Shown here one piece after another: positions 19,103 through 51,389 of a DNA stretch of 64,000 nucleotides; positions within the stretch are counted from its first letter, which is position 1; each line of letters begins with the position of its first letter. Source of the stretch: Podarcis muralis (taxonomy: Eukaryota). Made by a program: the position numbers and the translations under genes. The notes below the pieces were generated by a model. The model made no database searches and had not been told where the DNA came from. It saw nothing but the letters and a program-made list of their open reading frames with translations. The stretch covers positions 68,820,001 through 68,884,000 of the forward strand of contig NC_135656.1 in NCBI RefSeq assembly GCF_964188315.1, written 5' to 3'.

Positions 19103-19127
19103 CCACAGGAAGTGTCACTATGGAAAC
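19103..19127. promoter_or_regulatory. ETS site plus RFX X-box upstream of the RGS14 start codon
   Basis: caggaagt abuts gtcactatggaaac (19114-19127), which fits the X-box consensus GTHNYY-AT-RRNAAC; about 180 bp 5' of the ATG at 18932. Confidence 0.45.

Positions 19128-22260: not shown

Positions 22261-22262
<2 letters not shown>

Positions 22263-22319
<57 letters not shown>
22263..22319. repeat. (AG)n microsatellite
   Basis: About 28 perfect units, read directly. Confidence 0.98.
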
Positions 22320-22320
<1 letters not shown>

Positions 22321-22505: not shown

Positions 22506-22779
22506 AAGTCCATTTATAGCATTCATAAATGAAGTAAATAAGAGGTTTTTGTCGATTAAGCAGTATATTACTCTCGTTAAAGAAAGAAAATTAAAATGCA
22601 AGTCATGGGCATAGCCATGATTTATGTTAAGGTCGGGTGCAGGACTTTTGTTAGGGGGGCAGAACCGAGCTATATGCGACGCAATTGCTCAGTTAGTTAA
22701 GTATTTTTATTTATTTACTTGATTGGGGAGGGGGGCAGCTGCCCTCCCTGCACCACACCGGGTGTTAGGGAAAGGTGAC

Positions 22780-23300
22780 CCGGCCGAGCCCTTGAAGAGG
22801 CCAGCCTTTCAGGACGGTACCCACGTCGCGCGCGGTTCTCCGAGGCTGCGCGCGAAGGCCGACCCTGGCGCCTGGGAGACTCGGCGGCTCTGCTTTGGAC
22901 TCTCACGACGCCCAAAAGCCGCAGCAAGGCGGGAGCCCCGGCACTGGCTCCTTCCCGCCCTCTCTGCATTTCCATGGAGACAGGAGCAGGAAGTATAAAC
23001 GAGAAATCCGACTTCATCTCTCTCTCCACAGGCGCCACAGCCGGAGCCTTCGAAGAAACGTCCCCGGGCGCCTTGGTGCGCGCGCTGCGTCTTCGGGCAA
23101 GTCTCGGGAAGGAGGCGGAGGGCGCCGCGTTGCCGCTTGGTTCTTTTCTTCCCCAGAGACTGCGAAGGAAGCAGCCTGAGGAAAGGGTGGGAAGCTGTGG
23201 AGGGAACCGTCGCCTCTCCCTCATCAGATGGGCGCAGGAAGGGAGCGGAGAGAGAGCGCGCGCAGAGGAAGAGTTGGATGCGTGAGCAGGACTCAGCAGA
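22780..23300. promoter_or_regulatory. CpG island / probable promoter of the WD40 gene, divergent from RGS14
   Basis: Dense CpG (gcgcgcg, ccgg runs) immediately 5' of the WD40 exons; X-box-like atttccatggagac at 22968-22981. Confidence 0.75.
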
Positions 23301-23684
23301 CCCTCTTTGCTCTTATAGGATGACACGAAGCCCCTAGGAGGGCAAGAGTCCCTTAATCAGCAGGTTAGAGGAGAAAAGTTGAGATGGTACAACTTTTCTC
23401 ACCCAGTCAATAAAAGCTTTCTGCAGGTGAAAGTTCATAGGGCAAGTCTTGGGTTTGCTTGTTTTTTAATGGGTCCAGAGAAGATTCCCTAGGGAAACTA
23501 TTAGCAAGCCGGCTCATTATACTGAGGCTGCTTCCAGCCTGCTACTTAGCGGCAATTTCAGGTTACGCAATTTCTGTCGATTGGGAGGTCCTCGCCAAAC
23601 AAGCCGACTTCCCCCAAAGACCTTGGAAATCTGCCAGAAGGGTGACCCTGTGTTTCCCCACGTTCTCTGGCCCTAATCTCAGTC

Positions 23685-26600
23685 ATGGCTATGCAAGAGC
23701 ATCTGAAGGTGAAAGAACGTCATCGCCGCCCCATAACAGCTCTTGGCTACCATTCAGCCCGACGGGAGTGCCTCACAGGCTTTGAAGGTGAGTCCTAGCT
23801 AGGGAGGTACATTTTTCCAGTTCTTTGTGAGCATTACAGCATTAAATTCTACCCAACTTCCATGCCTGCTTTGTACAACATGCCCAAATCTTGGACAGTT
23901 ACATCACATAATAGACCACCATTTCCATCCCCACAACAAGAGTACAGCCCAAAACACAGTATATACCTGAACCAAGAGTCTGCTTTCTGTCTCATCTACA
24001 TGCTTTCAGCTCATGTCCCCATATGACCTCTGAATTTATGCTTGAGTTCTCATCAGGGAATGCCATGCTAGCACAGTGCCCTCATTCAAAACCCGGCAGG
24101 TTTTTCCTTAAGGCATCTCTCTCCAAATGAGCTGGAGACGTTCCTTCCGAAACAAGCTCCTAGCTAAACAAGCTGTATTGTCACCCTTCTTGCCCTGATA
24201 GATGGAGTGATCAAATGGTGGGACGTGGAGAATGGGCGCATGTCCCTCTGCGCCAAGGAGCATGCTGGCCGAGTCACCCACTTCCAGTCCTGGGTGCAGG
24301 CACGACTCCTCTTCTCTTCTTCCAATGATGGCTCCGTGCTTGTGTGGGCTGTAGGCGGCACTGTTCTTGACCGCATCCTGGTAAGAACCACACCGTATTA
24401 CATCCTGGGGTCAGGGCAGGCCAAGAATAATGACACAGTTGCTTTTCTGAAGTTTGTAAGTCATTGCATGGAATTGACCAGATATCATAGAACAGGGTTT
24501 ACCAAACTTGAGTCTCCAGCTGTTTTGGACTACAATTCCCATCACCCTTGACCACTGGTCCTGCTAGCTAGGGATGATGGGAACTGTAGTCCAAAAACAG
24601 CTGGAGCTCCAAGTATGGGAAACCCTGTCAGAGAGTGATTGTGCTAAACTCTTGCTGCTCAAGGAATTCTGGGGGTTCCTGGGATGCTGCAGCTGCAATT
24701 TAGGCAGAGATCTCACTTTCTGCACCTACTAACTGAGGCTTCTGAGGATAAAGGGGAACTTCCCCCAACCAGTATTCCCACAAAGGACTGCAACTCAGAA
24801 GCAGAGCACATGCATTGCATACAGGAAGCCCCAGGCTCAATTCCTGGCTTCTCCAGGTAGTGCTGGAAAGGACATCTGTCTGACACCTTGGAAAGCTGCT
24901 GCCAGTCAGTGCAGACCTGGAGTGCCTAAGCGGTGGCCTTCCAGAACTCCCATCAGCCCCAGCCAAGCCTCAGGAATGATGGGAGTTGCAGTCCAACAAC
25001 AAATGGAGAGCTGCAGGTTCCCTGTCCCTGGGGTAAAAGGCAGATTCCTAAGTATTGTTTGGCTAACTAAACAATCTATGACCTTTTCAGCTGGGGGAGG
25101 GGTATTGTTTTTGTTAGTATGCTGTACATTTTTGTGTTTTTATTTTGTAAACCACCCTCAATCTTTGGATGAAGGGCCATATAGAAATGCAACGAATAAA
25201 TAAAATATTTGAGCCCTTGAAGTGTAATGTTCATTCTGCAAGACAGGCAGTGCTTTCTTCTTGGGGGTACTCAAGGGTTTTCGGTGCCAACACCTCCCCC
25301 CCCCCCAACACCAAATGTTAAAAGTGTGGCACTTAATGCAGCAACTTCATGGTGAGTACCGGCACCTTTTATTTCTTTTAAAAAAGCACTGAAAACAGGA
25401 TTAGATTTTGCTGTCTTCTGGGCCTCGAGTGCCCTGCTGGTCTAACTCCAATAAAATCTATGTAAGACCAGGCCTTTCCAGAGAGTCTTGCAGGGTGAGA
25501 ACTAGGCAGTATTGCCTCCCTGAGTCCCTAGAGCCTATTATTTTGTGCACAGTCTTCCTGAGCTCAAGCCAGTCCCCGCTTTCACCCCCCTCCAGCTAGG
25601 CTACCCTATCTTCACCTTGTCCATCAGCCTGGCTCGGCATCTTCTGCTCTGTGGCAGCAAGGGACGCCTGATGGCTTTCCCCTTGGATGAAAGGAGAGAA
25701 TCGGGCCACGTGGTCCACATGGCCCAGGGCTTTTCCGAGCACACACACACAGACATCGTGTCCTGCATCGCCTGCCTGGACAACCAAATATACACAGCAG
25801 GGTAAGTTGGGAGTTGCGGGAGTGAAGAATGGGCTCCGTCTGCAGATGGGTTCAAAGTACAGGCCCTCTGTGATACTTACAGCTTTGTGAAATGCTTCTA
25901 TCATATGACTCATGTCATGCAGAACCTTATCAAACAGGCCCTGCTGGAAGGGAGTGAGATGGTCTCCTGCAAGGTGACAGTAATAATGTGGTTTCTGGAT
26001 GACTGTGAAGGACAAAGCAGTGAGTCATACACATTTTCCCAAGGAGGGAATCTGCAGCTCTGCTTTGAAACCAAAGCTCCCTCTCTCCCACCACGGGGAA
26101 GTTTAAGCCACACCAGCCTCAGAGTCCAGCTTCAGTAGATCCAACAGTCCCTTCCCTTCCCAGGTACGACAAGAAGCTGCTGATCTTTGACACCTATCAG
26201 ACTCCAGGCAGGAAGGGCCTGACAACCAAGCACTGCATCCCACGCGCCCATCGTGCAGCCATCACTCACCTGCTGCTGGTGCGGCAGCAAGAAACCACGA
26301 GGTACAAGCTCAGTGCAAAGGGCAGGCCACCTAGGCCGTGGGATCTGGATAATGGGTTGTGTGGGTGAAGGCCTTTGTCAAGAGGTGCTCTCCTGCTACG
26401 TGACCCATGACTGGTCAGCATCTAATTGACTCTCCTTCCCCCCAAACAGGAAGGTACTAGGCAAGAGTAGCCAATTAGGTACTAGCAGCAGCGAACTGAG
26501 GGGAGACTTTTGTGCTGAAGGATAGTCTTATGTTGTACTTGCATGGCAGCTTCCTGGTGCCACAATTCTTATGTAGAACAGGGGTGGGAAACCTCAGAAC

Positions 26601-29600
26601 CGGGGCCAGGGGTAGACCTTCAGGCCTCTTTGAATGACTCCTGGGACTTGTCCCAGGCCACCCACCTCCATCCACAAGCTGATCCTGCTCCACATCCCCC
26701 TCATGGCAAGAATATGCTGCTGAGTTGCGACAATGCCTCTTGTTCGCCTGGATGTGGGCATGCTGTGGGCATGCGTAGAAACCTCTGGCTGTTACTGTAG
26801 GAAAAGTAGGAGTCATACCAATGACTCTGCCCATTTTTGCCTTTGACTCTGCCCACTGCTGGCATGAGGCCCCAGGAAGAGAATGTGGCCTCTCACTCGG
26901 GCTGAAAAAGGTTCCTCATTCTGGCATAAGGACAGGGAAACGAGACAAAGCAGGATTCCCTCTTTAGTCACTTCAAAAGGGCAAATCCTGCTGGCCAAAG
27001 AGATCTGCTGTGGTGTGGATGGAAGCATACAATTGAAGGAACAAGGATGAGCTAAATTCGCTCTCACATACAGAAAGCGAGGATCACTGTGCGCTGAATG
27101 CACACCTACCACCTTTTATAATGTACTCTGCATAAATTCTCTTCCCTTACAGTCCTTAATTCCTGCCTCCGCCCCCTCTGATTCACGTTTCCTAGGTTAT
27201 ATTTCTTCTCCATTTTTGAAATAAAAAAAATACTATTTGGGTTTTGCTCCCTCCTCCTTTCCCTTCCCCTCCCTTTGCAGCTTCCTTCCTTTCCTGAGAA
27301 GTTAGCATGGGGATGGGGAAAGGAGAAGCGGGAGGAGATGCCTCCTTCTCTGAATGGATTTCTGTTGCAGAGGCTGGGGCTCTAAGTGGCAGATCTAGAG
27401 CCAGAGGGCTCTGGAAGGATGACGTTTACCACAAAGAGGAACTGGAAGCCGCAGGATGTTACTCGAACCTCTGGCCAGGAGGGAGAGGCTTTGAGTGTGT
27501 TCCGCTTGGGGAAGTGTAAAATAAGAACACTTTGCTTAAAGAAAAAAGAAATGTTATATTTTCTCCTGCTTTCAATGATTCACTAGAAAGGGAGCCTTGG
27601 GTTTATATAGAGGGTGTGAAGTCTTTGCTTGAGAAATGTAAACGCAGCCCTGCTCCTCCACTGCACTGCCAAAGTCCTGCTTCCCTGACCCGCCCTCTGG
27701 TCTGTGATCTCCTCTGCAGGGTGCTCTCAGGTTCTTTTGACCAGACAGTTGGCATCTGGTCCCAGGATGGGAAGCTCATCCAGCGCCTTGGCCCCTTCAC
27801 CGGGAACATTACTGGACTCTGCTACGTGGCATCTGTTGGCATCGTCTGGATCACCAGTGGCACAACCCAGCCCACCCTCTATGAGCCTCAGTCTGGGGAA
27901 ATAGTGAGCGACTTAAGTGTGGCATTTCCATGTACACCTCCGCCTAAAGATCAATGAACTTGTTATTATAAGGAGCCCTCTACTGGTGATGGATTAGCAT
28001 TGCGTCCGCCTCAACTAGCATAGTGTTTTCTTTCCCTTTCTGTCTTTGTGAATTGTGGCCAAGAGGATAAGCCAGCTGACTCTCTCCACATGCGCTGCCA
28101 GGCTGCGCCAATCAACTCCCACACTTGCCCGCAGTCTTAGTATATTAGGCATGTGCATTAAAACTATATAAGCTAGCATTGTCCAGTTTTTTGTTTTCTT
28201 CCAGCAAGGGCACAGTCCTAGTGGAAAACAATTGCTGCCAAGGGTTTGGCCATGCTGTGCAAATGGGGACCGATAAGCCCAGGATCCTGTTGCTCACCCA
28301 TGTTACACATGAAGCAGGATTTTGTAGGGTGCCTTTTCATGGGCTGTTACTTCAGACTGCAGGAGTGAAAGTTGCATGGGGCATATTCAAGTGTGCCATC
28401 CTCAACCCACAGCAGCCTGAAGCAGGGCAGCTCACAAAAGCTTTATCACTTGGTTCTGCAGAATGTGCTAAGGTGCCATTTTGCCTGGGACAGATTTCCA
28501 GACTTGGAAGTCAATTTAAAGCCTGCCATGCCGCCTAGTCCTCCATGCATGACATTATTTGGCTTATTGGTGGTTACCAGCAAAAGATGCCTGGGGACCA
28601 GTGCCTTGTGAGGGGAGGGTACAATAGTAAGCTTTGTGTGTCAAAAAAAAGGCCCCTGGTTCAGTCCCTGGCATCTCCACTTAAAATGACCTAGGTAATG
28701 GGAGCAATCAATTCCTGAGACCCAAAGGAGCTGCTGCCACTCAGAGTATTAAATACTGGACTGGATAGATAAATAGACTGACCTGGAACAACATACGCAA
28801 TGTCCCCTGTTCCTATGGGAGCTGTTCTATTGGATGATTTTTCCTTGTAGAATTGCCTGTCCTTAGTTGGCCTCAGCTCCTCATATTGATTAGTTTTTAT
28901 CATATGAAAAATTACCCATGTCAAAAAGAACACTCTTTGATGGAGCACGTTTCTTTTAACAAGCTGCCTTACCTTGACAGATCAGACCCATTTTGCCTGA
29001 TTAATGACACGATACAGATGACATAAAAACTATACACAGCCGTTTTATATTGAAAAATTACTCTGATCCTCTTCCAAATGTCAGATGGCAGATATACTGA
29101 AGATTAAATCCTGTCTCTTCTCATTTCCTTAGCTGTTGTATCCTCCCATTCTCAGGGCCTCTTCCTGAACATGTTTCTCAATTGCTATTTCCATTGGGTA
29201 GGTGCTTCAAAAGCCATTAGCGCCTCTAACACTGTATTCCTGGATCTGCAAACTCCCCCAAAAACATACTCAAAGATTACATTTCTTTGTAGCTTTCAAT
29301 ACCAGATCCAACTGCATTTCACAGTTCCATCCCAAGTTCTGTCATGTGCTCCACAAAGCTCAAAAGTCCATTGAACAAGTGCCTCCAGCACAGCTCTTTT
29401 TGATAGGTCTTTGACCCCTAAGTAAATATGGCTCTTGTGTACCATTCCACATTTATAGGAAGAATAAGGAGAAACAGGTATTAAATGGCCAACCTGTTCT
29501 GAATTCTTTGTGCTGATCTGCTTTCAGGTTTCACAGTTCATATCCACGTTCCAAGGCCGACAGAAAGATGGGCCTGCTCTTCAGCAGCTTCTCAGCCTGC

Positions 29601-32600
29601 CAGACTCGAGGCATGTGATAGGTGAGTTCTCCAGTAGAGTACAGATGCCCCCCCCACCCGCAATACAAGGCCTCACCTGGTCTCTCAGCCGCCAATTCAG
29701 CATCTCTTCTTATCTGTAAGCCATGTCCTTTCATGCAGTTAGGAGAAAATAGCTTTAGTGGAAGATACTAGAACAGTATGGCACCCAGTGGTGAGAGCAT
29801 TGAATTAGCATTGGAGATATCCAGGTTCATTCCACCACTCAGCCACAAAGCTTGCTGGGCCTCCTTGGCCAATCACCCTCTCCCAGTTTAGCTTATGCCA
29901 CTGGATTGTTGTGGGGAAAACATGGGGTGAGTAAACTATGTCTTTTGCCCTGAACTCCTTGAAGGAAGGGGGATGCAGGTGGCGCTGCGGGTTAAACCAC
30001 AGAGCCTAGGACTTGCTGATCAGAAGGTTGGCGGTTCGAATCCCCGCGACAGGGTGAGCTCCCATTGTTCAGTCCCTACTCCTGCCAACCTAGCAGTTCA
30101 AAAGCACGTCAAAGGGCAAGTAGATAAATAAGTACCACTCCAGTGGGAAGGTAAACGGCGTTTTCGTGTACAGCTCTGGTTCGCCAGAAGCGGCTTAGTC
30201 ATGCTGGCCACATGACCCGGAAGCTGGACACCGGCTCCCTTGGCCAATAAAGCGAGATGAGCGCCGCAACCCCAGAGTCGGCCACGACTGGACCTAATGG
30301 TCAGGGGTCCCTTTACCTTTACCTTTTACCTTGAAGGAAAGGCATAATATAAAAGTAGTAAAATTTATTAATTAGTACAAAAAAAGGGCTTTCATCACAG
30401 AACCAGGCGGTGACCTTGGTAGGCTCGTGTGCTTATTGCATTCAGACCCAGTGTGGGTTTAGCACTTGGGAGAGACTAAATGTTCCCATGGGCACCTGGT
30501 TAATTGTTGTGGGAACAGGTTTTTTGCCTGATCCAGCAGGCTCTTCTTATGTTCCTGTTGGTTCCCACCACAGGTCCCAGATTTATATCCAGAGATTCCG
30601 GTTTCATGCGAACAGGTGTTGTGAGATCTATGCATGCTTTTCTAATTTAACACAAGGCGATTTCCCACTCAGCTTCTTCAAAGATATTATAAGGCTCAGT
30701 GGATGGCAAGAGCTTTTTAGAATAACCCAAGTAATTTTAAGAAACACAGAACTTTCCCTTCTTCCAGGCACAGCAAAGCCGCAGCAAATACTCGTCTGGC
30801 GCTACAGCGAGTTGGGATGCCTGACAGTGCTGCCTTGCAAACACCCCCTAGAGTGCCTAGCTTATGGTAAGCAGCCATATATATCTCTAACTCTGCAACA
30901 GCTCCAGCCCCAGATGCACAAGCTCCGTCAGGTGAGGTACAAAGCTAGAAGAACATTATCTGGCTGGGACAAGAGCCAGGGTTGAGTTTTGTGTGTCCAG
31001 CAATAAAACTTTTGTCTGGTTTTCTGAAGCCCCTGCTTGAACTTCTGAATGTATCTCCACCAGCCAAAAAGGAGCCCGTTTTGCTCTTCAGTGGGGACAG
31101 CAGTGGGATGCTACAGAAGTGGGAGAAGAGCTACATCTCGCCCTTCATCTACAGGTAAGGTTTCATCCCCACAGACCAAGAAGAGATGCCAGTCCCTGGT
31201 GTGTGACATGGGTTGGGGAAGCCCCTATTGCAAGGTGCAGCAGTGAGCAGAGGCTGGCCTAAGAGCAGCAGATTTCTGTTGGTAAGGCGAAGAAGCACAG
31301 CCCCTGCCAGAGGAGACTCTGTAGTGTAGCAGGTCTGTGCTATTTGGTGTCCAGATAGAAGCTATCTACTGGTTTCCAGAATAATAGAGGAGCTTAACTA
31401 CTAAAGTGTTACCCTTGGTCATTAGCTGCCATTGGCCTAGAACACAAGCCCCTGGAAGAGATGTGGTTGGAGGAATGCTGTGATCTGGGAGGAGTCTCCC
31501 TTGCCATCTCTCACTAAGTCAGGGGGGTGTTGGACTACAACTCCCACCATCCCTGTCAATCAGCCACCCTGGCTGGGACTGATGGAACTTAAGAGTCCAT
31601 CAACATCAGGAGGGTCACAAATTTCCCATCTCTGTAGTGGAGTTTCAAAAAGTTGTTCTTCTCCAGCATCTGGCTCTAACCGTGTCATGGTTAGTAGTGC
31701 TGTACAAAGATGAGATGCTTGCGGACAAGCAGACACCTACCCATCCTAGTCCCTCGTGCTCCCTGCCCTCTGCAGCTGCCCATTCTCCGCCTGCTCCAGT
31801 CCTGCAGCCATGCAGCCATCTGCCCCTCATGCCGTTGTGAGCTAACAGCCTTCTCACCCATCCTCAACCACAACCCTGTCCACAGCCACAGGTCTACACT
31901 CCCCCCCCCATCCTGTGTGTCTCTGTTTCTTTCAGCAGGGAGTCCTTCCACCTAAGTAAAGCCCAACTGGAAAGAAGAGGCCCCTTGGCACAGCAGAGGG
32001 AGGAGGATGGCAAGGAGAAGCCACAACCTCGTCCAGATTCCCCTCGAAAGCCAGGAAAGACCTCCATTGGGCAGCAGAGTGGCTACACCAGGTTCCGAAG
32101 TGCAGTGAAAGACATGCGAAAAGGAAGCATAGGTTTCACTAGGTAACTGTCATTGTGCTCTGCCCAAGCGTATGTGCTACTGTAGCAGAGAGGCAACAGC
32201 ATAATTTGTCTTGAAGAGACCGAGGGACTGCCCTTTCTTCCTTGGGGATCAGGCAGACCTTCACCATTTGCTTTGCAGCAGGGCTGGACAACCTGTAATG
32301 CTCCAGATATTGTTGGAGCCATGCTCCCATCATCCCTTGCTAGTATGACTAATGGTCAGGGATGATGGTCACCAAGCTGGCCAGAACAAGGCATGATTTA
32401 ATTTTTTGGGGGGGAGAGTTGGCTTCTGTAATGTTGGCTGTGAAATGACAGGTGAAAGGTAGTTGCTGCCTTGCTAATGAAGCCCTGGGCCTTTGCCAGG
32501 GCTCTCTTTGCTGAAGAGTTGAATATCCTGGTGGTGTCAGCAGCTGATGGGAACATTTATCTCTGGGAGTTTGAGAGCTTCATCCCGGAACCTTCTGCCG

Positions 32601-35600: not shown

Positions 35601-36926
35601 CAGCACAAAGCAATGCATATACTGTGATGGTGCATATTGGAGCCATGTGCTTAATCTGTATCAGCATCCTGTTCAGAGATCCAGCTGCATGTTGATGACA
35701 TTTGGTGAGGTCATGCCCACTTTTGAGCTGGGCAGCACTACCAAAAGATTGTCCCCATGCTGTATTCTTGTTGTTTAAATAGGGTATTCTATTGCACTTC
35801 CAGTCCTCCTACAAACAAACTAGTACTTAATGGAGAGGGGGAATTGTATCCTTTTTTATTTTAGAATTCAAAGCAGTTTACAAGACGTTTACCTATCATA
35901 GCACAGCCGAGGGGGTGGACTGAAGAAATAATTATCAGTTTTCTGTTTCTGTCTGGCTTCTCTAACAGTGGCTGACAATAAGCTGAATCCTACTGAGGGA
36001 GCAAACATGGCTGCTCCCCTCTAGCTTGTATCTAGGCCAGCAATAGCCATCCTTTGTGGAGCAGGCAAGGACGGCCTCTACAAGCTAAGAATATGCCTCA
36101 GAAGTTGCTACAGGATTCTGTCGTGTATTCTCTGTTCACATGGGAAGCACTCAGATCCTGCTCGTGGATTTCTCACAGGCACCTGCCTGACAGCTGTGAG
36201 AACAGAATGCTGGATGAGATGGGCCTTTAGTCTGGTCCAGCAGGCCCTGTTCTTAAGCTGAACATGGGAAGTCAGATGTGCACACAGTGAGTTGGCTCAC
36301 TGCTTAAGCCATGAGTGTGCCTCTCAGAGTCCTGAGGATATTGCTGAGGATTCTGGGGCGCAGACTTGATTTGTGCACAGCCAGCCATGCCAGAAGCAGA
36401 ATACATATGTGGCTTATAGTGTTGTTCCTTAAATCATGCTGGGTGTCTGACCAAATGTCACTTGGGTCTTTGGCCAACTAACTTTTTTTTAGCATACTCG
36501 TTTAAAAAAAGCAGCTTCCTTACTGATTGCTTTAATGCAAATCTGTCAGTTGTGGAGAAGTACACCCACACACCCACATGCGTATCAGGAAGGTGCAATG
36601 TGGCAGGAGGAAATCCTGTTCTGATATCCTAGTTTGGCTTGCACTGATAGCGGATCCCAGGCTGGTGCCGCCCACTCTAGTCTGCTATGCAGTTGGGTGG
36701 GAGACCAATGCAGTCTGAAGACCCACATGAGTGAGGACTATCGGTGACCGATGCACTGCATGGAGACACTGAATCCAGCCCCATAGAGGGTGCTGACACT
36801 GTTGCACCCTGACGTGTTCTTCTCTCTGCTTCCCTGCAGTATGTGTCGGTCTCTCTAGATGGCACAGTGTGCATGTGGAAGGCCTATCACCCAGGGGAGC
36901 AGCTCAAGGCCCAGGTCAGGTGGTGA
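23685..36926 (+). CDS. Uncharacterised multi-exon WD40-repeat protein, about 731 aa, about 14 WD-like repeats (probable double beta-propeller); 5' end uncertain
   Basis: GT-AG, phase-consistent exons: 23685-23787, 24202-24380, 25596-25801, 26164-26301, 27720-27903, 29528-29621, 30768-30866, 31064-31154, 31939-32142, 32500-32602, 32880-32976, 34092-34186, 34421-34545, 34794-34977, 35202-35314, 35414-35507, 36840-36926 (TGA). The total is 2196 nt, open throughout. WD signatures include GFEDGVIKWWD, SSSNDGSVLVW, TAGYDKKLLIFD, SGSFDQTVGIWS, GHTGMVTAL...SGGWDGKLCLWD, GHKAAVVALVW...SGAEDGSIRLW and GHQDSVKGL...SVSLDGTVCMWK. Exon 32880-32976 is the least certain and was chosen by phase fit. Confidence 0.88.
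24492..24628. mobile_element. Palindromic hAT-like MITE
   Basis: cagggtttaccaaactt...aagtatgggaaaccctg; central gaccactggtcctgctagctaggga is shared with the copies at 38183 and 57429. Confidence 0.75.
25248..25391. mobile_element. hAT MITE
   Basis: cagtgcttt...aaaagcactg termini; flanks aagacagg / aaaacagg (7/8 TSD). Confidence 0.75.
29968..30328 (+). mobile_element. Sauria SINE (tRNA-derived head, Bov-B-like tail), full length
   Basis: Head gggatgcaggtggcgctgcgggttaa...ggttcgaatccc (A/B boxes), (ACCTTT)n tail, and 11-bp TSD ccttgaaggaa at 29957-29967 and 30329-30339. Confidence 0.9.
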
Positions 36927-37639
36927 CTTCACTCTCCTGCTGGGTGCTACCCAGGACCTAGACTCTGAGACTCTCAGCTTCCATTTTAACAAAGAGCACA
37001 TTTCCATCCTTTGCGGTTGTGCAGGAAAGCTTCAAAAGACATCAGACGTGTGTTCAGCATGCTCAGAAGCCAGTGAAACAGCTAGGTGGGGCTTCCAGTG
37101 GTCAAGGGTGAGGCTTCTGTGCTCTGCTGCTTCCTGTCCCCTCCCCATAGTCCTTGCTTCTGTGTCTCTCTTTCCTCCCCTTTTACTGCCGTCACAGTCC
37201 CTGCAAGCATATTCTGTGAAATGACATTTGCAATGAGAATAACTTGTGCCAACCAAGAACATACAAGCTAATGTGGATAATTAACTGTGATCTTTTCTTT
37301 GGTGCTGTCTTCTGCCCGTGCCCATGTCCTGCTGTACTTAAATTAGATTTGAGCTTACACATTCAAGGCAGAATGCAAGAACTTCAAAAGGCCAGGCACA
37401 GCCGGTGATTAGGTGCCCCCAGCCAGCCTGAAATGTGGCAGGAAGCTTTCATGTCAATGAGTCATCTCTGTATAAGCAATTTGCACTCATATTCTAAGAA
37501 ATAATGCAGCCTAGCCAGGAAAGGTTAAAAAATTAAAAACAGCAGTAAACGCTGATGCATATTGATTGAAATTCTTTTCCGGACACATGATCAAAGTTGT
37601 TAGTGCAGTAAACATGCAGCTGTTAGCCACTGGCTAGGC

Positions 37640-37874
37640 CAGGGGTAGGCAACCTAAGGCCCGGGGGCCGGATGCAGCCCAATCGCCTGCGGACGGTCCG
37701 GAAATCAGCATGTTTTTACATGAGTAGAATGTGTCCTTTTATTTAAAATGCATCTCTGGGTTATTTGTGGGGCATAGGAATTCGTTCATTTTTTCTTCAA
37801 AATATAGTCCGGCCCACCACATGGTCTGAGGGACGGTGGACCGGCCCATGGCTGAAGAAGGTTGCTGACCCCTA
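37640..37874. mobile_element. hAT (Charlie-like) MITE with perfect 8-bp TSD
   Basis: caggggtaggcaacct...aggttgctgaccccta; TSD ggctaggc at 37632-37639 and 37875-37882. Confidence 0.88.
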
Positions 37875-38182
37875 GGCTAGGCAGAGCCCAGACATCTTCG
37901 CTCCAGGATGTGCTTCAGTTGCAGCAACACCACATTCCCCGTTCTGTACATGCCGTGCTCTGAATCTGAGAAAATTAATTTTGTCTCCCAGATAGCACAT
38001 GCACCATTATTGCGATTATTGCTGTAATGTGATTATATAAGTGTTAGGGGCACCTACTTACTGGCAATGAGAATGGTGATGAGCAATTATAACTCCCACA
38101 CTGCTTCTGTCTGTACAATTGTGTGGCTTTCCTCTTAATTTTGTTACATATCTATTTGCAAACATTCGCCTAGCATGTAGAA

Positions 38183-38318
38183 CAGGCTTCCTCAACCTCG
38201 GCCCTCCAGATGTTTTTGGCCTACAACTCCCATGATCCCTAGCTAGCAGGACCAGTGGTCAGGGATGATGGGAATTATAGTCTCAAAACATCTGGAGGGC
38301 CGAGATTGAGGAAGCCTG
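38183..38318. mobile_element. 136-bp palindromic hAT MITE with perfect 8-bp TSD
   Basis: caggcttcctcaa...ttgaggaagcctg; TSD atgtagaa at 38175-38182 and 38319-38326. Confidence 0.92.
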
Positions 38319-40034
38319 ATGTAGAACACAGAAATCTGCTTCATGCTGTGTCAGACCATTTGCCCATCTAGCACTGCACACAGACAACAGCTTTCCAGGG
38401 TCTTATATTGGGGTCTTTCCCAGCCATATGTGGAGATGCAAGGGATTCAACCTGGGACCTTCTGCATGCAGAGAAGATGCCTTACCATGGAGCTACAGCC
38501 ACATCCCACTGTGAGTGACACAGGTGCTGCTATTGATGCTTGTTATGAGGAACTGAACACACCAGTTAGGCTGCATATAAAGTTTGATAACCAGAGCTAA
38601 AAGCTCTAGGACAATGGAGTCAAATTCTCTCTGTGAAGCCTATTTTTGTTCCCTCTTGGTTGCTAGGCAGTGGTGTAAGAAGAAAAACAATCTATTGTGC
38701 CAGAATGCCATCCTGTGTGCGCCCGGATATGCCAAGCTGGCATTCAGAGGCACACAGGCCAAAGCAGCAAGTGTTTTTCCCCTGACATCAGCTCTGCTGT
38801 CCAGTTGTATTAATATCAGCATATACTTGTTTTGGGAACCACATGCCACTTTTGAGAGCTACGTTGTGGCTTTCGGTGCTATTTCCTTATCAGGGATTTT
38901 TCCATTTTTACTATTTTGAGAACAGAGCTGATTGCAGAGTAACCAAGAAACATCATGTGCCCATGGTAACCAACTGGTCAAGCAATGCTGACCACCAGTC
39001 TCAGGATGATGCTTGCAATGAGAGTATCCATCTACACTGCTAATGGATGCAATCTCTGTTAACTGCGTTAGTGCTGAATTCCCTTGTATTGCCCCTCAAA
39101 GATTCATAAAAAGGGGGCTCTGTATTTCTCTGCCCAGTTGTTCTGCATGTGACTCTACCTGGACAGTGCTACAGCTGTACAATAAACTTACTCTTCTCTT
39201 TTCGCTACTCATGAATTGTACACTCTCTTGTTGCTGCGACGGATCCAAACTTCTGGGGTTTGGAAGCAGGTAACTGAGACCATCAAGTGACTTGCAAACT
39301 TTAGGGACTCCTGTTGCTGTGCAGAAGGGGTACTCCACTCCAAAAGCTTGTGCTGTTGCCTATGTAGCCTGATCCCTTTGCCCTGCCAATTTAATACTAT
39401 TTCTTGCCCCCCAGCCTCTTTTAACTTTTCTAGTAGTAAATATTCTTTGAGTAAGTAGAGCAGGGATGGGGAACATGTTACCCTCCAAATGCTATTGGAC
39501 TACAACTCCCATCATCTCTGGCTGGGGCTGGTGAGGGTTGGGTCCAAACACAGGTCCTCAGCCCTGTTGCAGAGCGTGCCTTTTCTTCACTAAGCATCTG
39601 CCACCCATTCTCACATATGCTGAGCAAAGGTTTCTCACCAGAGTCAGCCCCACAGTACTCTAACCTTCTGACAGTACCAGTTTAGACAAGATATTTGTCA
39701 CAGGGTTTGACCTTGTGTGGCTCTTGGGGTGTCATTGCTGGCACATAGTGGGTGGAGCAGCTAGGGAGCATGGAGAGGGGCTTTAACCCTCAGCCCTCAC
39801 CATCCATCACTCTGGTCAGCATCCTGTAAATCCATCCCTGCTTCTTTACACTGGAAGGAAATCTCTTATGGGCACTGGTGAGAGCTTTCCTCTCAATGTG
39901 CGTGGCTGGTGCTGGGAAAGGGGGAATTCGGATCAGGATATTAGTATGAGCAAAGGGTGTTAGCTCACCTTCCTGAGACAACATCCCCCTTTGCACCTAT
40001 TTCCTTCTTTTAAAAAATCAGCCACACAAGTCCA

Positions 40035-40540
40035 AATGTACTATCTAGGTTAGCCCTAGCCTGGAGGCTATGGAAGCATGCATCGCTGAGGCCACTCTGT
40101 ATCTGCCAAGGCTGCTTAACCAGCCTAAGCTGGTAAAAAAAAGTGCTCTGTGCCACAGAGGAAACTTGTGCCACTGGTGACAAAATACGGTTCAAGAAGC
40201 ACCCTGAAACCATAAACTTGTTCCTCCAGAGGGAATGCAACCCCATCAAAAGTGGGATGAATACCACTCCCCTTGGCAGACAAGCCACTCACCAAGAGTG
40301 ACTCGGGTCTCATCTGCATTGAGCCTCAGTTTCTTGCCCCACATCCAGTCCATGACTGTGCTGAAGAAGCACTTGTTCAGCACTTCCTCAAAGCAGATGG
40401 AATTAGATGAATTGGGCTTCCTGCCTCACCTGTCAAAGAGAACTGGAGCTGAGGGTTATCTGCTTATTGATGACTCCTGGTGGCAAATCTCTGGATGACG
40501 TCACTCAGTCGTTTCATGTAGATGTTGAAAAGCACAAGGA
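40035..40540 (-). mobile_element. Decayed L2/CR1-clade reverse transcriptase fragment
   Basis: Broken frames read LFNIYMKRLSDVIQRF...HQ*ADNPQL (degenerate YADD), then TVMDWM... and AQVSSVAQSTFFYQLRLVKQ. Confidence 0.75.
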
Positions 40541-41284
40541 ACAAGACTGAAACCCATAGCACAAATGCTCAAGCACTACATTCTGACATAAGCTATCCGG
40601 GTAGCAGTGGAATCATTGTAAAATTGTGCCTCTAATTCTCAGTCCAGACAGTCTGTCCAGACTGAGAGGTCAAGAAGAATAAACAAGGCAGCACTCCTCC
40701 TTTCTCCTGGCATAAGTCATCCATCAGGGTGACTGAAGTAGATCCAGAAAATCAGTTGGCACCAGGTCTGTCTTGAAACTTTTTCTTAAAGAACAATGCC
40801 AAGTAGCCATTGCATCCCATTAAGCAATGGGATTTCAGACTCCCTGTCGGTTAGAATACTCCTACAATGGGCCTACAAGTTCAGAGAGCCCAGTAAATCT
40901 ATTCAAATGAAAGCTGGATCAAATTGCCTTTCGTGCAATTACATGAATTCAGAGATGCATGGAGGGTGGTTGGCTGTGGAAGGCAGCCAGTACGTGTGAC
41001 AAAAAAATTATTTTGAGGAAAAAGTGGAATGCCTTACATTTTCTTCTGGTGGGTCTAGTGGGAATCTTGCTCCTTGGTTTTTTACTATGTTCAGCAGTCT
41101 CACAATAATTAGTATTACAATATATCTATGAGGAGTGCGCCTTCCAAGAAAAGCAGCCCCACAAAACCTTAAAATGGCTCTGGTTAACATTAAAAAATGA
41201 AAACAAGTGTTTTTTCTCTCCCCCCCCCCCCAATATGTGTGTGTGTGTGTGTGTGTGTAAATTTTCTGTTTTACAATTTAAAAT

Positions 41285-41665
41285 ACTCATTTAAGCATCC
41301 TTAAAATATCAATGACTTCCCTTCTCTTTCCATGGTTCATTTTGCATATCATAAATCTCTGCATTTACAAAAACTAAACCATTCAGTGTTCCATTATTAC
41401 ATCCATCAAAACTTATTTATACTGTTGAATTTATCTTAATGCTGCCAACATTTTCAAGTGTATACAATTTACCCCCACGTACAGTTCAATAAACATTTTC
41501 CAATCTTCTCTAAACGTATGTTCTTGTTTTCTCATTCTATTTGTTAAGTCTGCAAGCTGTGCATATTCTGTCAGCTTAAGTTGCCATTCTTCTTTAGTTG
41601 GGACCTTGCTCGTTTTCCATTTTTGAGCTAACAAAACACAGGCCGCAGCAAGAGTGGTTTTTTTC
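41285..41665 (-). mobile_element. L1-like ORF2 C-terminal fragment plus 3' UTR
   Basis: Peptide AAACVLLAQKWKTSKVPTKEEWQLKLTEYAQLADLT...FREDWKMF resembles the C-terminus of vertebrate L1 ORF2. Confidence 0.65.
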
Positions 41666-41726
41666 AAGCAAGACGAGGAAAGGGCTGCAGGAAATCCTAT
41701 ATAGTAATTGAACCAAGGGTGCATAT

Positions 41727-41860
41727 TGTTGTTGTTGTTGTTGTTTAGTCGTGTCCGACTCTTCGTGACCCCATGGACCAGAGCACGCCAGGCACTTCTG
41801 CCTTCCACTGCCTCCCGCAGTTTGGTCAAACTCATGCTGGTAGCTTCGAGAACACTATCC
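41727..41860 (-). mobile_element. Short Bov-B 3' insertion with 16-bp TSD
   Basis: (TTG)n tail then tagtcgtgtccgactc...gaacactatcc; TSD aaccaagggtgcatat at 41711-41726 and 41861-41876. Confidence 0.93.
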
Positions 41861-42494
41861 AACCAAGGGTGCATATACACCATACATTTAAAGCACACAG
41901 CTTCCTCCAAAGAATCATGGGAACTGTAGTTTATTCCTCACAGAGCTTCAATTCCCAACACCCTTATCAAACTACAGTTCCCAAGATTCTTTAGGGGATT
42001 CCATGTACTTTAAATATGCATTAAATCATGTGTGGTGAAGTCTGCAGCCTTAGTTTCCACACCAAGTTTTCTTCCACTGCTGGGCCTACCATTCCTTTGG
42101 GTTGGAGCGGGGAGGACCTGAGCAACCTCGTCAGACCATCAAGTCACCCAGATAGAGAAAATTTCCACCCCCGAACTGCGTAAACTAAGATGCTAACCAA
42201 AAATACTCAAGCACCTTGTTACATGTTCAAATCTGGTTGGGCAGACAGGCATCTTTTGCCTGGAGCTTCAGGAGTGGACTGGGTCAAGCCAGGGCGACAG
42301 CTGGCAGTAGGGGGATTTACCTAGGGTATTACTAAACACCCTGGGTAAATTGAGAAACACAAGCTAATTCTGGAGTCCTAATCCTCTTCCTTCCCCCAGC
42401 TGGAGTGAGGCATGTCAGTCACGCAGTGGGGACCCAGCTACCAGCCTAGAGCGCTTCCACGGCTGGCTCTGCAGAGGATGTAGAGAGCCTGACC

Positions 42495-45400
42495 ATGGGT
42501 GAAGTGCAAAAGGTGAGTGAATTCTGATCCTGTAACAAATACGGGGGGGGGGGGGTTAGCATTCACAGAATGACTCTTTCGGCATCTACTCTCTGGCAGG
42601 ACTTGCTATCAGTCTGCTCCCCAGAACTGGTTCTACAGACCCACCATGATTACTATCTACACTTAATATCTGCAACATGGGGGCTGCAACAATGTGTTGT
42701 GGCTGTTCACTGTTTCAGTCAGCCATGCCTCCCACAGCAATATTCCCTTCTGTTCCTCCGTTGCCTGTCCCCCCCCCCCCCAATCCCTACTGAAAGTCAG
42801 CCAGAATTCTGTGCCTGCTGCACCATCTGTCCTCACTGGGCTGTTCTGGGGATCTCCATCACCAATTCCAAAATATTTCCGGTACTTCTGTAAACCTTGA
42901 GGTTCCTGCCGATAATCTCCCTCTTGTTCATGGATGGCACCATTTTGGCTACATGAGCAACAGCACTCAACCTCTCAACACAACACAAATGGAATGGTAA
43001 CCAGAAGCTGCAGAATGCAACCGTAGTGCCCATGGTGGAGGCTGGTGGGACCCTTCATGTGTGAGAGGAGCAGGGAAAATGAAGGTGGTCAAAACATGGC
43101 TATTAAATAATCTAAGGCCTGTGAAAGTGTGGGGGAGCTGACTGTTATTATGATGACTATTTTATTATTGGGCTGTCAGTATGCTTTTTGTTATGTTTTT
43201 ATCACTGATGTTCTATAAAGTATTTTGAATGTTCTACATAGCCTTGATAAAGGATAGTATATAAATTGTTGTTGTTGTGAATGGTATATAAATTGTTTTT
43301 GTTTTTGTTGTTATTTTATTTGTTCCCCATCCATCTGACTGGGTTGCCCACACATTCTCAAGCAACTTACATAAAAACATAATAAAACATTACATAATGG
43401 CTCATCATCACAAATTGAGAAAGCTGAACTTTGAGATGTTTCTCTGAAGCTGGTAAAATGGCCCCATTGTCAGCTCTGAAGCCTGGTGGGTAAAATCAAG
43501 TGACTGTCTAAGGGTGAAGGCTCAAAAACATGGTGGGCCCTCTCTAGGAGGCAACAGCTAGAATAAAGATCCCAGCCAGTAAATGCTGCTTTTGCGCCTA
43601 GGGCCTTCTCTCTGTCATCCAGAAGCTTAAAGGCTCTGAAGAGCAGGAGTTGCGAATTGTCCTCCTCGGGCTGGACAATGCCGGAAAGACTACGTTGCTC
43701 AAGAGCCTGGCATCGGAAGAAGTCAGCACCATTACCCCCACACAGGTAAGCACAGCGGCAAAGGAGATCAGCGCCGAGGGATTGGGATGGGGTGGGCGGC
43801 AAGGAGGAATTGGATAACCAGTTACATAAAGTCAGTGGAGCAGATTGGCAGTCAGGATCCTAACCAAACCCCTGCTGTTACGCTCCTCTCATCCCCACAG
43901 TGTGGAGCTCAGACACACCAGCAATAGCACCTTGGCTCTCTCAGAGCAACCCATCCCCTGTGCTTTTCAGGCAAGCCTTGTGGCTAAGACATTGTGTTGG
44001 GACGAGGGAAAATGAGTTGCTTTTATGTTCTTGTCACCAACTGGGCCCCATGCAAATTCTGTGTAGTTTGCAGCAGAGCAACAGGGTGGGGATTCTTCGG
44101 CATAGGAAGCAAGCGGCCCCTACTATGCCTCTCCCCTACCCACCTCTTCTGATTCCTTTTGTGAAGGGATTCAACATCAAAAGTGTCCACTCTCATGGCT
44201 TCAAGCTCAATGTCTGGGACATAGGAGGGCAGCGGGCGATCCGGGCCTATTGGAAGAAGTACCTGGGCAGCACAGACCTTCTGGTGAGTTGGGGCTCAGC
44301 CCCTAAAACTGCCTTTGTAGAAATTTGTCTGCCGGAACCACACAAGTTACCAAATTAAGGCAAGGCTAGCCCTAATATCCAGGGTCCTTCAGACAGCCTT
44401 TTCACTGTACATTTATGACGGCTTGTGTTCATCATGGTATGGGAACAGGGGATGGCTGCACACGATCCCATGTTCAATACTGTTACATCTGCAAAAGTTT
44501 TGGGGTGGATATACTGCTTTGTTTCCAATCGATACATGTCCCATAGCTGAAAGCCTTTAACTTTTCATGCTACAAATGTTCCAGATTTGGTGTGGTTTTT
44601 TGGTCCCACTTTTGTTCTGTTGTAATGCAAACATTCGGCTCCAGGTGGCGATAGTGTGGTAGCACTGAGCAAGCATCACAGAACAACGAATAAAGTGGAA
44701 TGATGTGTGAATGCTCAAGCATAAATCCACCTCTCATGTGTTATTATTGTATCAATGACATGTTGCACATGCAATGGAACCACTAATCTGGAAGGCCTTA
44801 GGCAGTGCCAGCTGACCGGCCTCAGATTCCAGAATTTAGAAGGTATTATCAGAGGACAACTGTCTGTTATTTTATTTACTTTATTATTATACTTCTACAG
44901 CCGCAATGTGTGGAGGGGGTGGGTAGGGCACCATTTGGATTTCATACCTTAAAAAGCAAGATGTCTTGGGGCTGCCTTAAAAGAACCAAAAAGCTTTAGG
45001 AGCTGGTAAGAGGAGCTGGGACCAAAGGAAGAATGCTGGGCTGTAAATGATTCCCTTCTTTTCCTCGTTGCAGATCTATGTTATTGACAGTGCTGACCAG
45101 AAACGCTTTGAGGAGACTGGGCAGGTAGGACAGACAGTTTACCTCCTTCAATCCCATAATTCTACCTATGACAGGAATTTGGTAATCTGGACTGTGGAGA
45201 ACTGCACACCTGGGAATGAGTGCTGTGAGGGGTGAAAATATTGTCAGATAATAGCAGAGTCTAGAAGTAGCGCCGAGGGCCTTCTGGCTGTTCCCTCATT
45301 GCGAGAAGCAAAGCTACAGGGAACCAGGCAGAGGGCCTTTTCGGTAGTGGCACCCGCCCTGTGGAACGCCCTTCCAGCAGATGTCAAAACGATAAACAAC

Positions 45401-45540
45401 TACCTGACATTCAGAAGACATCTTAAGGCAGCCCTGTTCAGGGAAGTTTTTAATGTATGATATTTTAGTGTTTTTTGGTTTCTATGGAAGCCGCCCAGAG
45501 TGGCTGGGGAAACCCAGCCAGATGGGCGGGGTACAAATAA

Positions 45541-45595
<55 letters not shown>

Positions 45596-46365
45596 GAACC
45601 CATTGTTCAGGTTGCTTGCTTGGTGTCTTAACCTCACATCTCCTTCTCCTTACCCCCTTTAGCTTAACGGGTTCAGAAGGTAGGGATCATGGGAGAATCA
45701 ACTGGATTATGACCACCACCATCATCAGGCGGCCACCCTGTGCTCATAGCAGTTAACAAGGAACAGCTATGACACATCCCTTGAAGGACAAGGCCCTACC
45801 CCTCTGGGTTTACCATTCAAAAAAGGAGTTTGTGAAACAGAGTACATTACAAGTACTAGTTCTAGGCAGAGGTGATGACAATTTGTGCCTGAATGCCACA
45901 GCTAGCAATATAACCTCCTCTGGGTGGGTCTTTATGTAACTTCAAGCAATGAGCCTGCTCAGAATCCACTGCGTTCTCTTTATCTTTGGCAGGAGTTGTC
46001 CGAACTAGTGGAAGATGAGAATCTCACGGGTGTCCCATTGTTGGTGTTTGCTAACAAGCAGGATCTAGCAACAGCATCCCCCGCAGCAGAGATTGCTGAA
46101 GGGCTCAACCTGCACACATACCGAGACCGGCCATGGCAAATCCAAGCCTGCTCAGCCCTATCTGGTGAAGGCATTCAGGTATGAAGGGGTGTGTTGTGTC
46201 TGTGAGATAACGCGGCCCATCGTGAAGTTCTGTAGGGAATGGGAAAGGGAGATGCTCATGGCTGGAATCAGAGCCCAGAAAGTGCTGCCAATCACTGTCT
46301 CTCTTTTATCTACCTAGGATGGGATGAACTGGATTTGCAGCGAGATCACAAGTCGGAAAAAATGA
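42495..46365 (+). CDS. ARL3-like Arf-family small GTPase (paralog of ARL3), 6 exons, 187 aa
   Basis: Exons 42495-42512 MGEVQK; 43602-43745 [10 protein letters not shown]...[12 protein letters not shown]...TPTQ; 44167-44283 GFNIKSV...WDIGGQR; 45074-45124 [17 protein letters not shown]; 45993-46178 ...VFANKQDL...[15 protein letters not shown]; 46318-46365 [15 protein letters not shown]. All G1-G5 motifs are intact and the peptide is closest to ARL3. Genomic context is unlike the human ARL3 locus, so it is probably a paralog. Confidence 0.95.
45267..45595 (+). mobile_element. L2-like LINE 3' end with (TTA)n tail (45541-45595)
   Basis: Colinear with the split copy at 656-1459; simple-repeat tail. 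Confidence 0.75.
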
Positions 46366-49779: not shown

Positions 49780-50480
49780 CTGAGGCTGAGAACGAGCAGT
49801 GCAGCGTCTGATGTTTCCGGGGTGGGGGCAGCAGAGGAGGAGCGACTTCTAACTGCCCCGCTCCAACCACTCGCAAGCCGACACGTTGCGCTCTCAGAAC
49901 CCCGGAAGGCGGTAGCAGGAGGATACGTTTCACTCTTCACTTTTCCTATCTCTACAGCCGCTGGGGGGCGGAGTTCCGGCCTACAGAGACCGGAGAGTTT
50001 CCGACGTCGATGGTTTCGGTTGCCTTGGTTCCCTTTCCTTTTTACCTCCGGGCGAAGGGTCGACCGGAAGCAGGAAGAAGAAGGGCAGGAGGGAGTAGGA
50101 TGGTCGTGGGTCGGGGAGGCGGTGGATCCGCGAGGTGCCTGCGGGGGTCGGCGGCCGCCATGGCGCTGCCGCCCCTGCTCTTCCTCCAGCTCCTCCTGGC
50201 CGTGTCGGTGCCTCGAGGGGCTGCGGAGCTCACAGACGGCAACAGCGAGCACCTGAAAAGAGAGCACTCGCTCATCAAGCCTTACCAGGGTGCGTGGGGT
50301 GGGCAGGGGCTGCTGCCCCCCGACTCTTCCGCCCCTTCCTTCTCGCCCGCCTTTCTCGAGCCTTTCTGCATCCTGGCTGCCCCTGGTTAACGTTCAGGTC
50401 GCGTTGGGCCAAGGGGAAGACTTGGTTTTGACACTTCAGGAAGTAGAGAGGAAAACCAAAGGGCCGCGGAGACAGTACTA
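49780..50480 (+). promoter_or_regulatory. CpG island promoter and exon 1 of LMAN2
   Basis: High CpG density; several ETS-type CCGGAAG motifs (near 49901 and 50064) upstream of the ATG. Confidence 0.8.

Positions 50481-51355: not shown

Positions 51356-51389
<34 letters not shown>

Follow-up and report, generated by a model that had tools for sequence, protein, structure and literature searches.

Does the lasting adjacency of two genes mean that they work together? This question is raised by a stretch of 64,000 nucleotides from the lizard Podarcis muralis (NCBI RefSeq assembly GCF_964188315.1, contig NC_135656.1, positions 68,820,001 to 68,884,000 of the forward strand; hereafter the window, with positions counted from its first letter), in which a gene for a WD40-repeat protein and a gene for an ARL3-type GTPase, here ARL3L, lie between RGS14 and LMAN2. 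A preliminary description of this locus had proposed that both genes were deleted together in the mammalian lineage and that they may act together in a function of the cilium or flagellum. The analyses presented here lead us to consider it probable that they are two unrelated, intact genes, old residents of the RGS14-LMAN2 block of jawed vertebrates, and that they are neighbours rather than a functional unit, because other animals have lost the WD40 gene and ARL3L separately.

Structure and identity of the two genes

The order of genes in the lizard window is RGS14 on the minus strand, followed by the WD40 gene, ARL3L and LMAN2 on the plus strand. The following models were obtained for the two genes in question.

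23685-36926, plus strand: WD40 gene, 17 coding exons, 732 amino acids (tblastn of orthologues and splice refinement)
23685-23787, 24202-24380, 25596-25801, 26164-26301, 27720-27903, 29528-29621, plus strand: WD40 exons 1-6
30768-30866, 31064-31154, 31936-32142, 32500-32602, 32880-32976, 34092-34186, plus strand: WD40 exons 7-12
34421-34545, 34794-34977, 35202-35314, 35414-35507, 36840-36926, plus strand: WD40 exons 13-17
37532-37537, plus strand: candidate poly(A) signal, the first AATAAA/ATTAAA past the WD40 stop (pattern scan only)
42495-46365, plus strand: ARL3L, 6 coding exons, 187 amino acids, all borders AG/GT
42495-42512, 43602-43745, 44167-44283, 45074-45124, 45993-46178, 46318-46365, plus strand: ARL3L exons

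The WD40 model, for which the Lacerta agilis protein P0273 was run by tblastn on the window before the splice sites were refined, has GT-AG introns throughout and one open frame from the ATG at 23685 to its sole stop at 36924-36926, and its product is 96% identical to P0273, as befits the origin of the window from a lacertid lizard. Matches to the Pfam families WD40 and Beta-prop were found on exons of this gene. With regard to the fold and to the searches described below, database orthologues (P0273 and the 650-residue gecko protein P0140) stood in for the window protein. The AlphaFold (AF2) model of P0273, which drew on 33 orthologues, consists of beta structure only, in about 58 strands (predicted local distance difference test score 81, predicted template-modelling score 0.75), with disordered stretches at residues 275-283, 389-427 and 461-501. 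Foldseek returned only tandem seven-bladed propellers for this model, the top double propellers with E-values of 1e-22 to 1e-29, and the matches, at 10-16% identity, included Nostoc 2ymu, TBL3, WDR3, PWP2, FAP52, Apaf-1, Gemin5 and Aip1. A profile search of PDB sequences with the WD40 family was equally generic, and DAW1 was among the better matches (128 bits). The model and its matches show that the product is a stand-alone protein of two seven-bladed propellers, with approximately 14 blades and two inserted disordered loops.

In the ARL3L model, the G1, G3, G4 and G5 motifs of ARF/ARL GTPases (PF00025) are all present, and the Pfam family Arf matched four of its exon pieces with E-values from 7e-17 to 0.024; three of these matches exceed the cut-off. 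Its first exon encodes just six residues, MGEVQK, and the stop is at 46363-46365. Among proteins of solved structure, ARL3 was the best relative, and exon 5 scored 96 bits with ARL3 versus 48 with ARL2. Likewise, the turtle orthologue P0024, which is 91% identical to the window protein, scored 306 bits with mouse ARL3 versus 199 with ARL2, residues 7-187 aligning without gaps on residues 2-182; identity to mouse ARL3, counted by eye on the printed alignment of P0024, was about 75%. Orthologues were 77-91% identical to the window protein (80-91% for those of sauropsids and teleosts, 77.5% for that of frog). Their names differ between groups: teleost entries read 'ARL3, like 1' or 'like 2', whereas those from squamates, birds, turtles and frogs read 'ADP-ribosylation factor-like protein 3'. 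No mammal was found among the best 120 protein-database relatives. The start MGE(V/A)QK is common to nearly all full-length vertebrate ARL3L matches, and the invertebrate ARL3 matches do not have it. On sequence grounds, we assign the gene to the ARL3 subfamily and, by its micro-exon and its RGS14 neighbourhood, to an ARL3L clade that comprises zebrafish arl3l1 and arl3l2, which zebrafish papers list apart from arl3a and arl3b. A long trinucleotide microsatellite (ATT-type) was also noted in ARL3L intron 4 (45540-45600).

In line with these results, the preliminary description was right about two intact spliced genes in tandem, about the double-propeller WD40 product and about the ARL gene as an ARL3 paralog.

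Distribution of the WD40 family

The WD40 family was reached through a library search with one exon, which gave mostly generic multi-repeat WD40 proteins and, as the sole orthologue among the matches, P0140, which then served as query. At E <1e-150, orthologues were found in squamates, frogs, salamanders, chimaera, sharks, rays, sturgeon, paddlefish, gar, bichir and lungfish, as well as in amphioxus, an acorn worm (hemichordate), three tunicates and two molluscs; below them, the matches dropped to generic bacterial WD40 proteins. A profile search with the family alignment added no taxa to those of the single-sequence search. Neither of these two protein-database searches gave a mammal, bird, turtle, crocodilian or teleost protein among the WD40 relatives, a blank that stands against the ready detection of invertebrate orthologues at about 40% identity (mollusc versus lizard). 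The same searches yielded no vertebrate paralog of the family at E <1e-10 and no member from insects or nematodes.

All orthologues are named 'uncharacterized' or, by automatic annotation, after a look-alike protein, and the literature yielded no paper about the family. The WD40 tree tracks that of the species, and each genome has a single copy. The family appears to be single-copy and of bilaterian age, and it has neither a name nor a literature. The squamate stem of the tree is long (0.78, versus 0.23 for frogs and 0.36 for salamanders), a hint that constraint was relaxed or shifted in amniotes, which may have preceded the losses in other amniote lines.

Synteny and separate losses

The arrangement in the lizard was compared with that in other genomes. 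Gar has RGS14(-), WD40(+), an Ig-domain gene and ARL3L(+), in this order, whereas the elephant shark shows RGS14(-) beside WD40(+), the gecko WD40 beside ARL3L, and the python RGS14(-) beside WD40. In the sturgeon Acipenser sinensis, gene predictions fuse WD40 with ARL3L, and the two genes are taken to be adjacent there for this reason. From the layouts in gar, gecko, sturgeon, shark and python, the RGS14/WD40/ARL3L block is ancestral at least for bony vertebrates, and the RGS14-WD40 pair is older still. Two side observations belong to these loci. The gar Ig-domain gene (251 amino acids, L005 28896-33004) had no match in the lizard spacer, and a pogo/Tc5-type transposase open reading frame lies downstream of the python WD40 gene (L007 26657-27553).

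A different picture emerged from three further species. Cormorant (RGS14(-), 2.3 kb, ARL3L, LMAN2) and sardine (RGS14(-), 4.6 kb, arl3l1) are without the WD40 gene, and the big-headed turtle, Platysternon megacephalum (RGS14(-), 1.7 kb, ARL3L, LMAN2), is without an intact one. The turtle spacer holds a relic of WD40 exon 5 (L003 9186-9330), 76% identical at the DNA level to window positions 27755-27860 and decayed by a six-residue deletion and a stop; no WD40 relic was found in the cormorant and sardine spacers. In amphioxus, the WD40 gene is flanked by a gephyrin-like gene and TBC1D23, and its surroundings contain no ARL gene. These comparisons indicate that the WD40 gene and ARL3L have different loss histories.

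As regards mammals, in the human GRCh38 gene table LMAN2 ends at 177,351,840 and RGS14 starts at 177,357,924, and no gene is listed in the 6.1 kb between them (PMC12989897). No relevant paper on the synteny of RGS14 and LMAN2 came up in the literature.

Promoters of the WD40 gene, RGS14 and ARL3L

The elements that bear on the control of these genes are given below.

22700-23300, no strand: CpG island, presumed WD40 promoter (GC 0.63-0.66, observed/expected CpG 0.82-1.0)
22968-22981, ATTTCCATGGAGAC, minus strand GTCTCCATGGAAAT: X-box-like motif, sole candidate in the CpG island
22968-22994, no strand: WD40 promoter footprint, with the X-box-like motif, then an ETS site CAGGAAGT at 22987-22994 and a GTAAAC-like core just beyond
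19106-19127, plus strand: ETS site CAGGAAGT and, directly after it, perfect X-box GTCACTATGGAAAC; distance to the downstream RGS14 ATG about 185 bp
42292-42494, plus strand: ARL3L proximal promoter and 5' untranslated region (blastn: turtle 70%, cormorant 77.5%)
42363-42385, plus strand: bipartite homeodomain element GCTAATTCTGGAGTCCTAATCCT, a Q50/PCE-1-like site and a K50 CRX/OTX site

The motif at 22968-22981 agrees with the strict X-box palindrome GTNRCCNNRGYAAC at 11 of 14 positions and with the looser form GTHNYYATRRNAAC at 13 of 14, carrying a T instead of the final C. Scanning with the strict consensus gave nothing in the CpG island and a window count at chance, and the looser form with at most one mismatch gave 22 matches in the window versus 9.3 expected. 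Taken alone, the motif is weak, no more than chance would give, and it was initially dismissed. It was then accepted as a promoter element because python (GTCGCCATGGAAAT) and gecko (GTCACCATGGAAAT) share it, with a change at the degenerate N position only, in an otherwise conserved block that goes on with the ETS and GTAAAC cores. Smaller CpG-rich patches surround the same element in both species. A similar GTCTCCATGGCTAC is found in CpG-rich DNA of the elephant shark, 671 bp upstream of the WD40 ATG; in gar and amphioxus, no X-box counterpart was found near the WD40 ATG. The X-box-like motif to which the preliminary description had pointed is best regarded as a conserved promoter element, a real footprint, and as a putative RFX site. 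A (GA)n microsatellite (22255-22320) lies immediately upstream of the island.

The X-box upstream of RGS14 has zero mismatches to GTHNYYATRRNAAC, and python, turtle and cormorant have the block around it conserved as well, so that RFX and ETS factors may act on RGS14. The X-box at 19106-19127 belongs to RGS14, and an X-box is not peculiar to the WD40 gene in this region. Because a perfect, conserved X-box is also present at RGS14, an X-box here is no mark of a cilium-specific gene. RFX factors control non-ciliary genes too.

The ARL3L promoter is of another kind. It is not a CpG island (observed/expected CpG 0.2-0.34), and no X-box match within one mismatch was found in it, the only nearby match lying at 43144-43157 in the first intron. 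Its bipartite element, GCTAATTnTGG-N5/6-TAATCCT, is invariant in lizard, turtle (L003 ~9858-9880), cormorant (L002 ~9865-9888), gar (L005 ~35800-35822) and sardine arl3l1 (L006 ~9730-9752). K50 homeodomains, among them CRX and OTX2, favour TAATCC, and Q50 homeodomains favour sites of the TAATT type (PMC6802965). Neither homeodomain site was present within 1.2 kb at the lizard WD40 promoter. The WD40 and ARL3L promoters differ in architecture and have no motifs in common.

On account of the conserved pair of CRX/OTX and PCE-1-like sites, ARL3L is predicted to be expressed in photoreceptor or pineal cells. This would fit the behaviour of zebrafish arl3l2, which is among the cilium-related genes that drop in the tulp1 knockout, a retinal-degeneration model (PMC9672332).

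RNA reads across the WD40-ARL3L interval

Three bulk RNA-seq runs and one single-cell run with the same species label, tissues undisclosed, were placed on positions 36750-42749. All reads in this interval fell on three dispersed repeats (37550-37949, 38150-38349 and 41750-41949), on both strands; since these reads, which number in the hundreds, are mostly 95-99% alike and fit only partly, they are attributed to other copies of the repeats. No reads spanned the WD40-ARL3L spacer. These runs say only that neither gene is broadly expressed, and they neither support nor oppose co-expression.

Flanking genes and other features of the window

Between the start codons of RGS14 and LMAN2 there are about 31 kb, and the two genes point away from each other.

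18932-18888, minus strand: RGS14 first coding exon, the head of the left flank gene, encoding 15 residues (81% by blastn to turtle RGS14 exon 1)
50160-55749, plus strand: LMAN2, the right flank (Pfam Lectin_leg-like on three exons; ATG at 50160, KRFY stop at 55749)

The left flank was recognised as RGS14 by minus-strand exons with Pfam matches to RGS, Raf-like RBD and GoLoco. An N run of 136 bases (1460-1595) lies within one of its introns. Beyond LMAN2, a p24/GOLD (TMED9-like) gene follows at 59376-62901 in the lizard; the next gene in cormorant is different, a glycosyltransferase-7 (B4GALT7-like, L002 18799-21250). The spacer between the WD40 gene and ARL3L measures 5.6 kb and is repeat-rich, and a minus-strand open reading frame at 41431-41910 forms part of a repeat that recurs at 13061-13366 and 5475-5990. 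An Rfam scan of the window returned zero RNA families.

Discussion

The gene structures, orthology, synteny, separate losses and promoter footprints established here indicate, in our judgement with good probability, that the WD40 gene and ARL3L are long-standing neighbours in the RGS14-LMAN2 block without being a functional unit. Long-conserved adjacency alone does not mean joint function. Much of the preliminary description withstood comparison with these data, namely the head-to-head orientation of RGS14 and LMAN2 and their position as human neighbours with no gene listed between them, but its central proposal did not. Deletion of both genes together in the mammalian lineage is not supported by the present data, and joint action is opposed by independent loss, by the amphioxus WD40 gene and by the different promoters; the synteny comparison gave the outcome that had been named beforehand as a refutation, independent loss patterns for the two genes.

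Several observations nevertheless weigh against the two genes being mere neighbours, or limit how far this account reaches. Gar, sturgeon, gecko and lacertid have all retained the same-strand tandem of WD40 and ARL3L, and NCBI predicts a read-through isoform in the gecko Paroedura, which leaves some room for coupling. The absence from mammals, as claimed in the preliminary description, holds for the protein databases and for one human gene table, and at the level of the genome it remains inferred. The split between ARL3 and ARL3L, in turn, is drawn from the start exon, the position and the identity values. Finally, neither the last exon and 3' untranslated region of the WD40 gene nor ARL3L exon 1 had any coverage in the four RNA runs.

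With regard to function, we infer tissue and biochemistry as follows. Transcription of the WD40 gene probably starts in the CpG island with the conserved X-box-like/ETS core, and its product would be a tissue-restricted scaffold, possibly under RFX control. ARL3L is the vertebrate ARL3 paralog, with all GTP-binding motifs kept and its main change in switch II. It may work as ARL3 does, as a GTP switch that frees lipidated cargo from carrier proteins, and might act chiefly in the sensory cilia of photoreceptor or pineal cells. Homology and a photoreceptor-type promoter make a link with the cilium plausible in the case of ARL3L; for the WD40 gene, the suggestion of such a link comes down to the conserved, imperfect X-box.

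The alternative that survives best, and which is compatible with the two genes being independent neighbours, is that the WD40 protein is an unrecognised, RFX-controlled protein of the cilium, centrosome or sperm flagellum that owes nothing to ARL3L. We regard this as possible, yet the less likely case. The X-box-like element in the core of the island, kept in lacertid, python and gecko with a change at the degenerate position only, speaks for it, as do the comparable motif that precedes the shark gene in CpG-rich DNA, the silence of the gene in four RNA runs despite its CpG island, which fits restricted expression, and a double-propeller fold that ciliary FAP52 has, among many other proteins. 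However, the motif is imperfect, no counterpart of it was found near the ATG in gar or amphioxus, the fold and sequence matches are generic (12-16% identity), and, as stated above, RFX factors also drive non-ciliary genes. Furthermore, mammals, birds and teleosts lack the gene, and their cilia are normal.

A functional module, in which the WD40 protein would serve the cilium or flagellum jointly with ARL3L and which mammals would have lost as a unit, seems unlikely to us. This proposal gains from the genes adjoining on the same strand in the four lineages named above (in sturgeon, as fused predictions), from the read-through isoform predicted in Paroedura, from the lack of a mammalian protein match for either gene, and from the conserved X-box-like element of the one and the ARL3 homology of the other. 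Against it, ARL3L persists without the WD40 gene in birds, turtles and teleosts, and amphioxus has a WD40 gene without an ARL neighbour. Moreover, a CpG island with X-box and ETS sites at the WD40 gene stands against a non-island promoter with a homeodomain pair at ARL3L, the perfect conserved X-box is found at RGS14 as well, and the predicted gecko fusion skips ARL3L exon 3, which bears switch I and switch II. Somewhat less probable again, and frankly speculative, is the idea that the WD40 protein, under RFX control, has since ancient times regulated ARL3-type GTPases or served as their effector scaffold without being recognised as such, in which case adjacency and read-through would reflect a functional tie, one that other proteins would have taken over where it was lost.

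We consider it very improbable that the functional product is a conjoined WD40-ARL3L fusion made by read-through transcription. Such fusions are predicted in Paroedura picta (P0272, 811 amino acids, isoform X2) and twice in Acipenser sinensis (P0329 and P0343). Nevertheless, the WD40 frame in the window closes at a conserved stop in exon 17, the repeat-rich spacer is crossed by zero reads, and a separate promoter and start exon, both conserved, belong to ARL3L. The gecko version passes from WD40 exon 16 through an extra exon of 39 residues to ARL3L exon 2, so that WD40 exon 17 and ARL3L exon 1 are dropped, in addition to ARL3L exon 3, and the sturgeon entries are flagged as hypothetical or unverified. 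The least credible option, that the ARL gene is the lizard ARL3 orthologue itself, relocated, has in its favour the NCBI name in most sauropsids and is opposed by the MGEVQK micro-exon and RGS14-side position common to teleost arl3l1/arl3l2, by the separate listing of arl3a/arl3b, and by an identity to mouse ARL3 (the value counted by eye) lower than that to sauropsid and teleost ARL3L, with frog ARL3L in between.

Both genes had already been predicted in public annotation, where ARL3L is named in zebrafish while the WD40 family is nameless. The present work adds the phyletic pattern of that family, the relic in the turtle, and two sets of conserved promoter elements, the photoreceptor-type one of ARL3L and the X-box/ETS ones of the WD40 gene and RGS14. 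ARL3 is a retinal-disease and Joubert-syndrome gene; the ARL3L paralog may compensate for it, a point that matters when ARL3 disease is modelled in fish, frog, chick or lizard, and ARL3L also bears on the evolution of lipidated-cargo delivery to outer segments. The WD40 gene, for its part, shows deep conservation, with about 40% identity from mollusc to lizard, but has never been studied, and it has gone unnoticed because mammals, birds, teleosts, insects and nematodes give no match. If the speculative scaffold idea were true, the protein would have escaped study through its absence from the annotated proteins of mouse, human, chicken and zebrafish. Since Xenopus, axolotl and Ciona carry the gene, they are usable for finding its function.

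Comparison with known systems

The WD40 protein shares its fold class with the tandem double propellers Nostoc 2ymu, TBL3/UTP13, WDR3, PWP2, Aip1/WDR1, Gemin5 and ciliary FAP52, and like them it has no other domain. Identity to these proteins is just 10-16%, with a template-modelling score of about 0.35, which gives no specific family tie; unlike them, it carries long disordered inserts between blades (~389-427 and ~461-501) and forms its own orthologue group. Its likeness to DAW1 consists of a frog orthologue automatically named 'DAW1-like' and of matching generic WD repeats. DAW1 was rejected as an orthologue, given that it is a single propeller of about 415-450 amino acids and the match covers generic WD repeats only. 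Among known ciliary WD40 proteins (CFAP52/FAP52, DAW1 and CFAP43/44), similarity to the WD40 protein was likewise generic.

ARL3L is colinear with ARL3 (1fzq, 4goj, 3bh7) from residue 7 without gaps, and keeps GLDNAGKT (G1), TPTQGF (switch I), WDIGGQ (G3), NKQD (G4) and CSA (G5), together with the amphipathic N-terminal helix. It differs from ARL3 in the extra first exon MGEVQK, in six substitutions in switch II (ARL3 sequence QRKIRPYWRSYFENT), and in its locus beside RGS14, its photoreceptor-type homeodomain promoter and the lack of a mammalian counterpart in our searches. Its closest parallels are arl3l1 and arl3l2 of zebrafish and other teleosts, named in ZFIN and NCBI, for which no dedicated functional study was found in the literature. 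The lizard gene falls in the same clade, has the N-terminal extension in common with them and is 80-85% identical to teleost arl3l1, which in sardine occupies the same head-to-head position with RGS14 and carries the same promoter element. Unlike arl3l1/arl3l2, lizard ARL3L is single-copy, and the WD40 gene still stands between it and RGS14.

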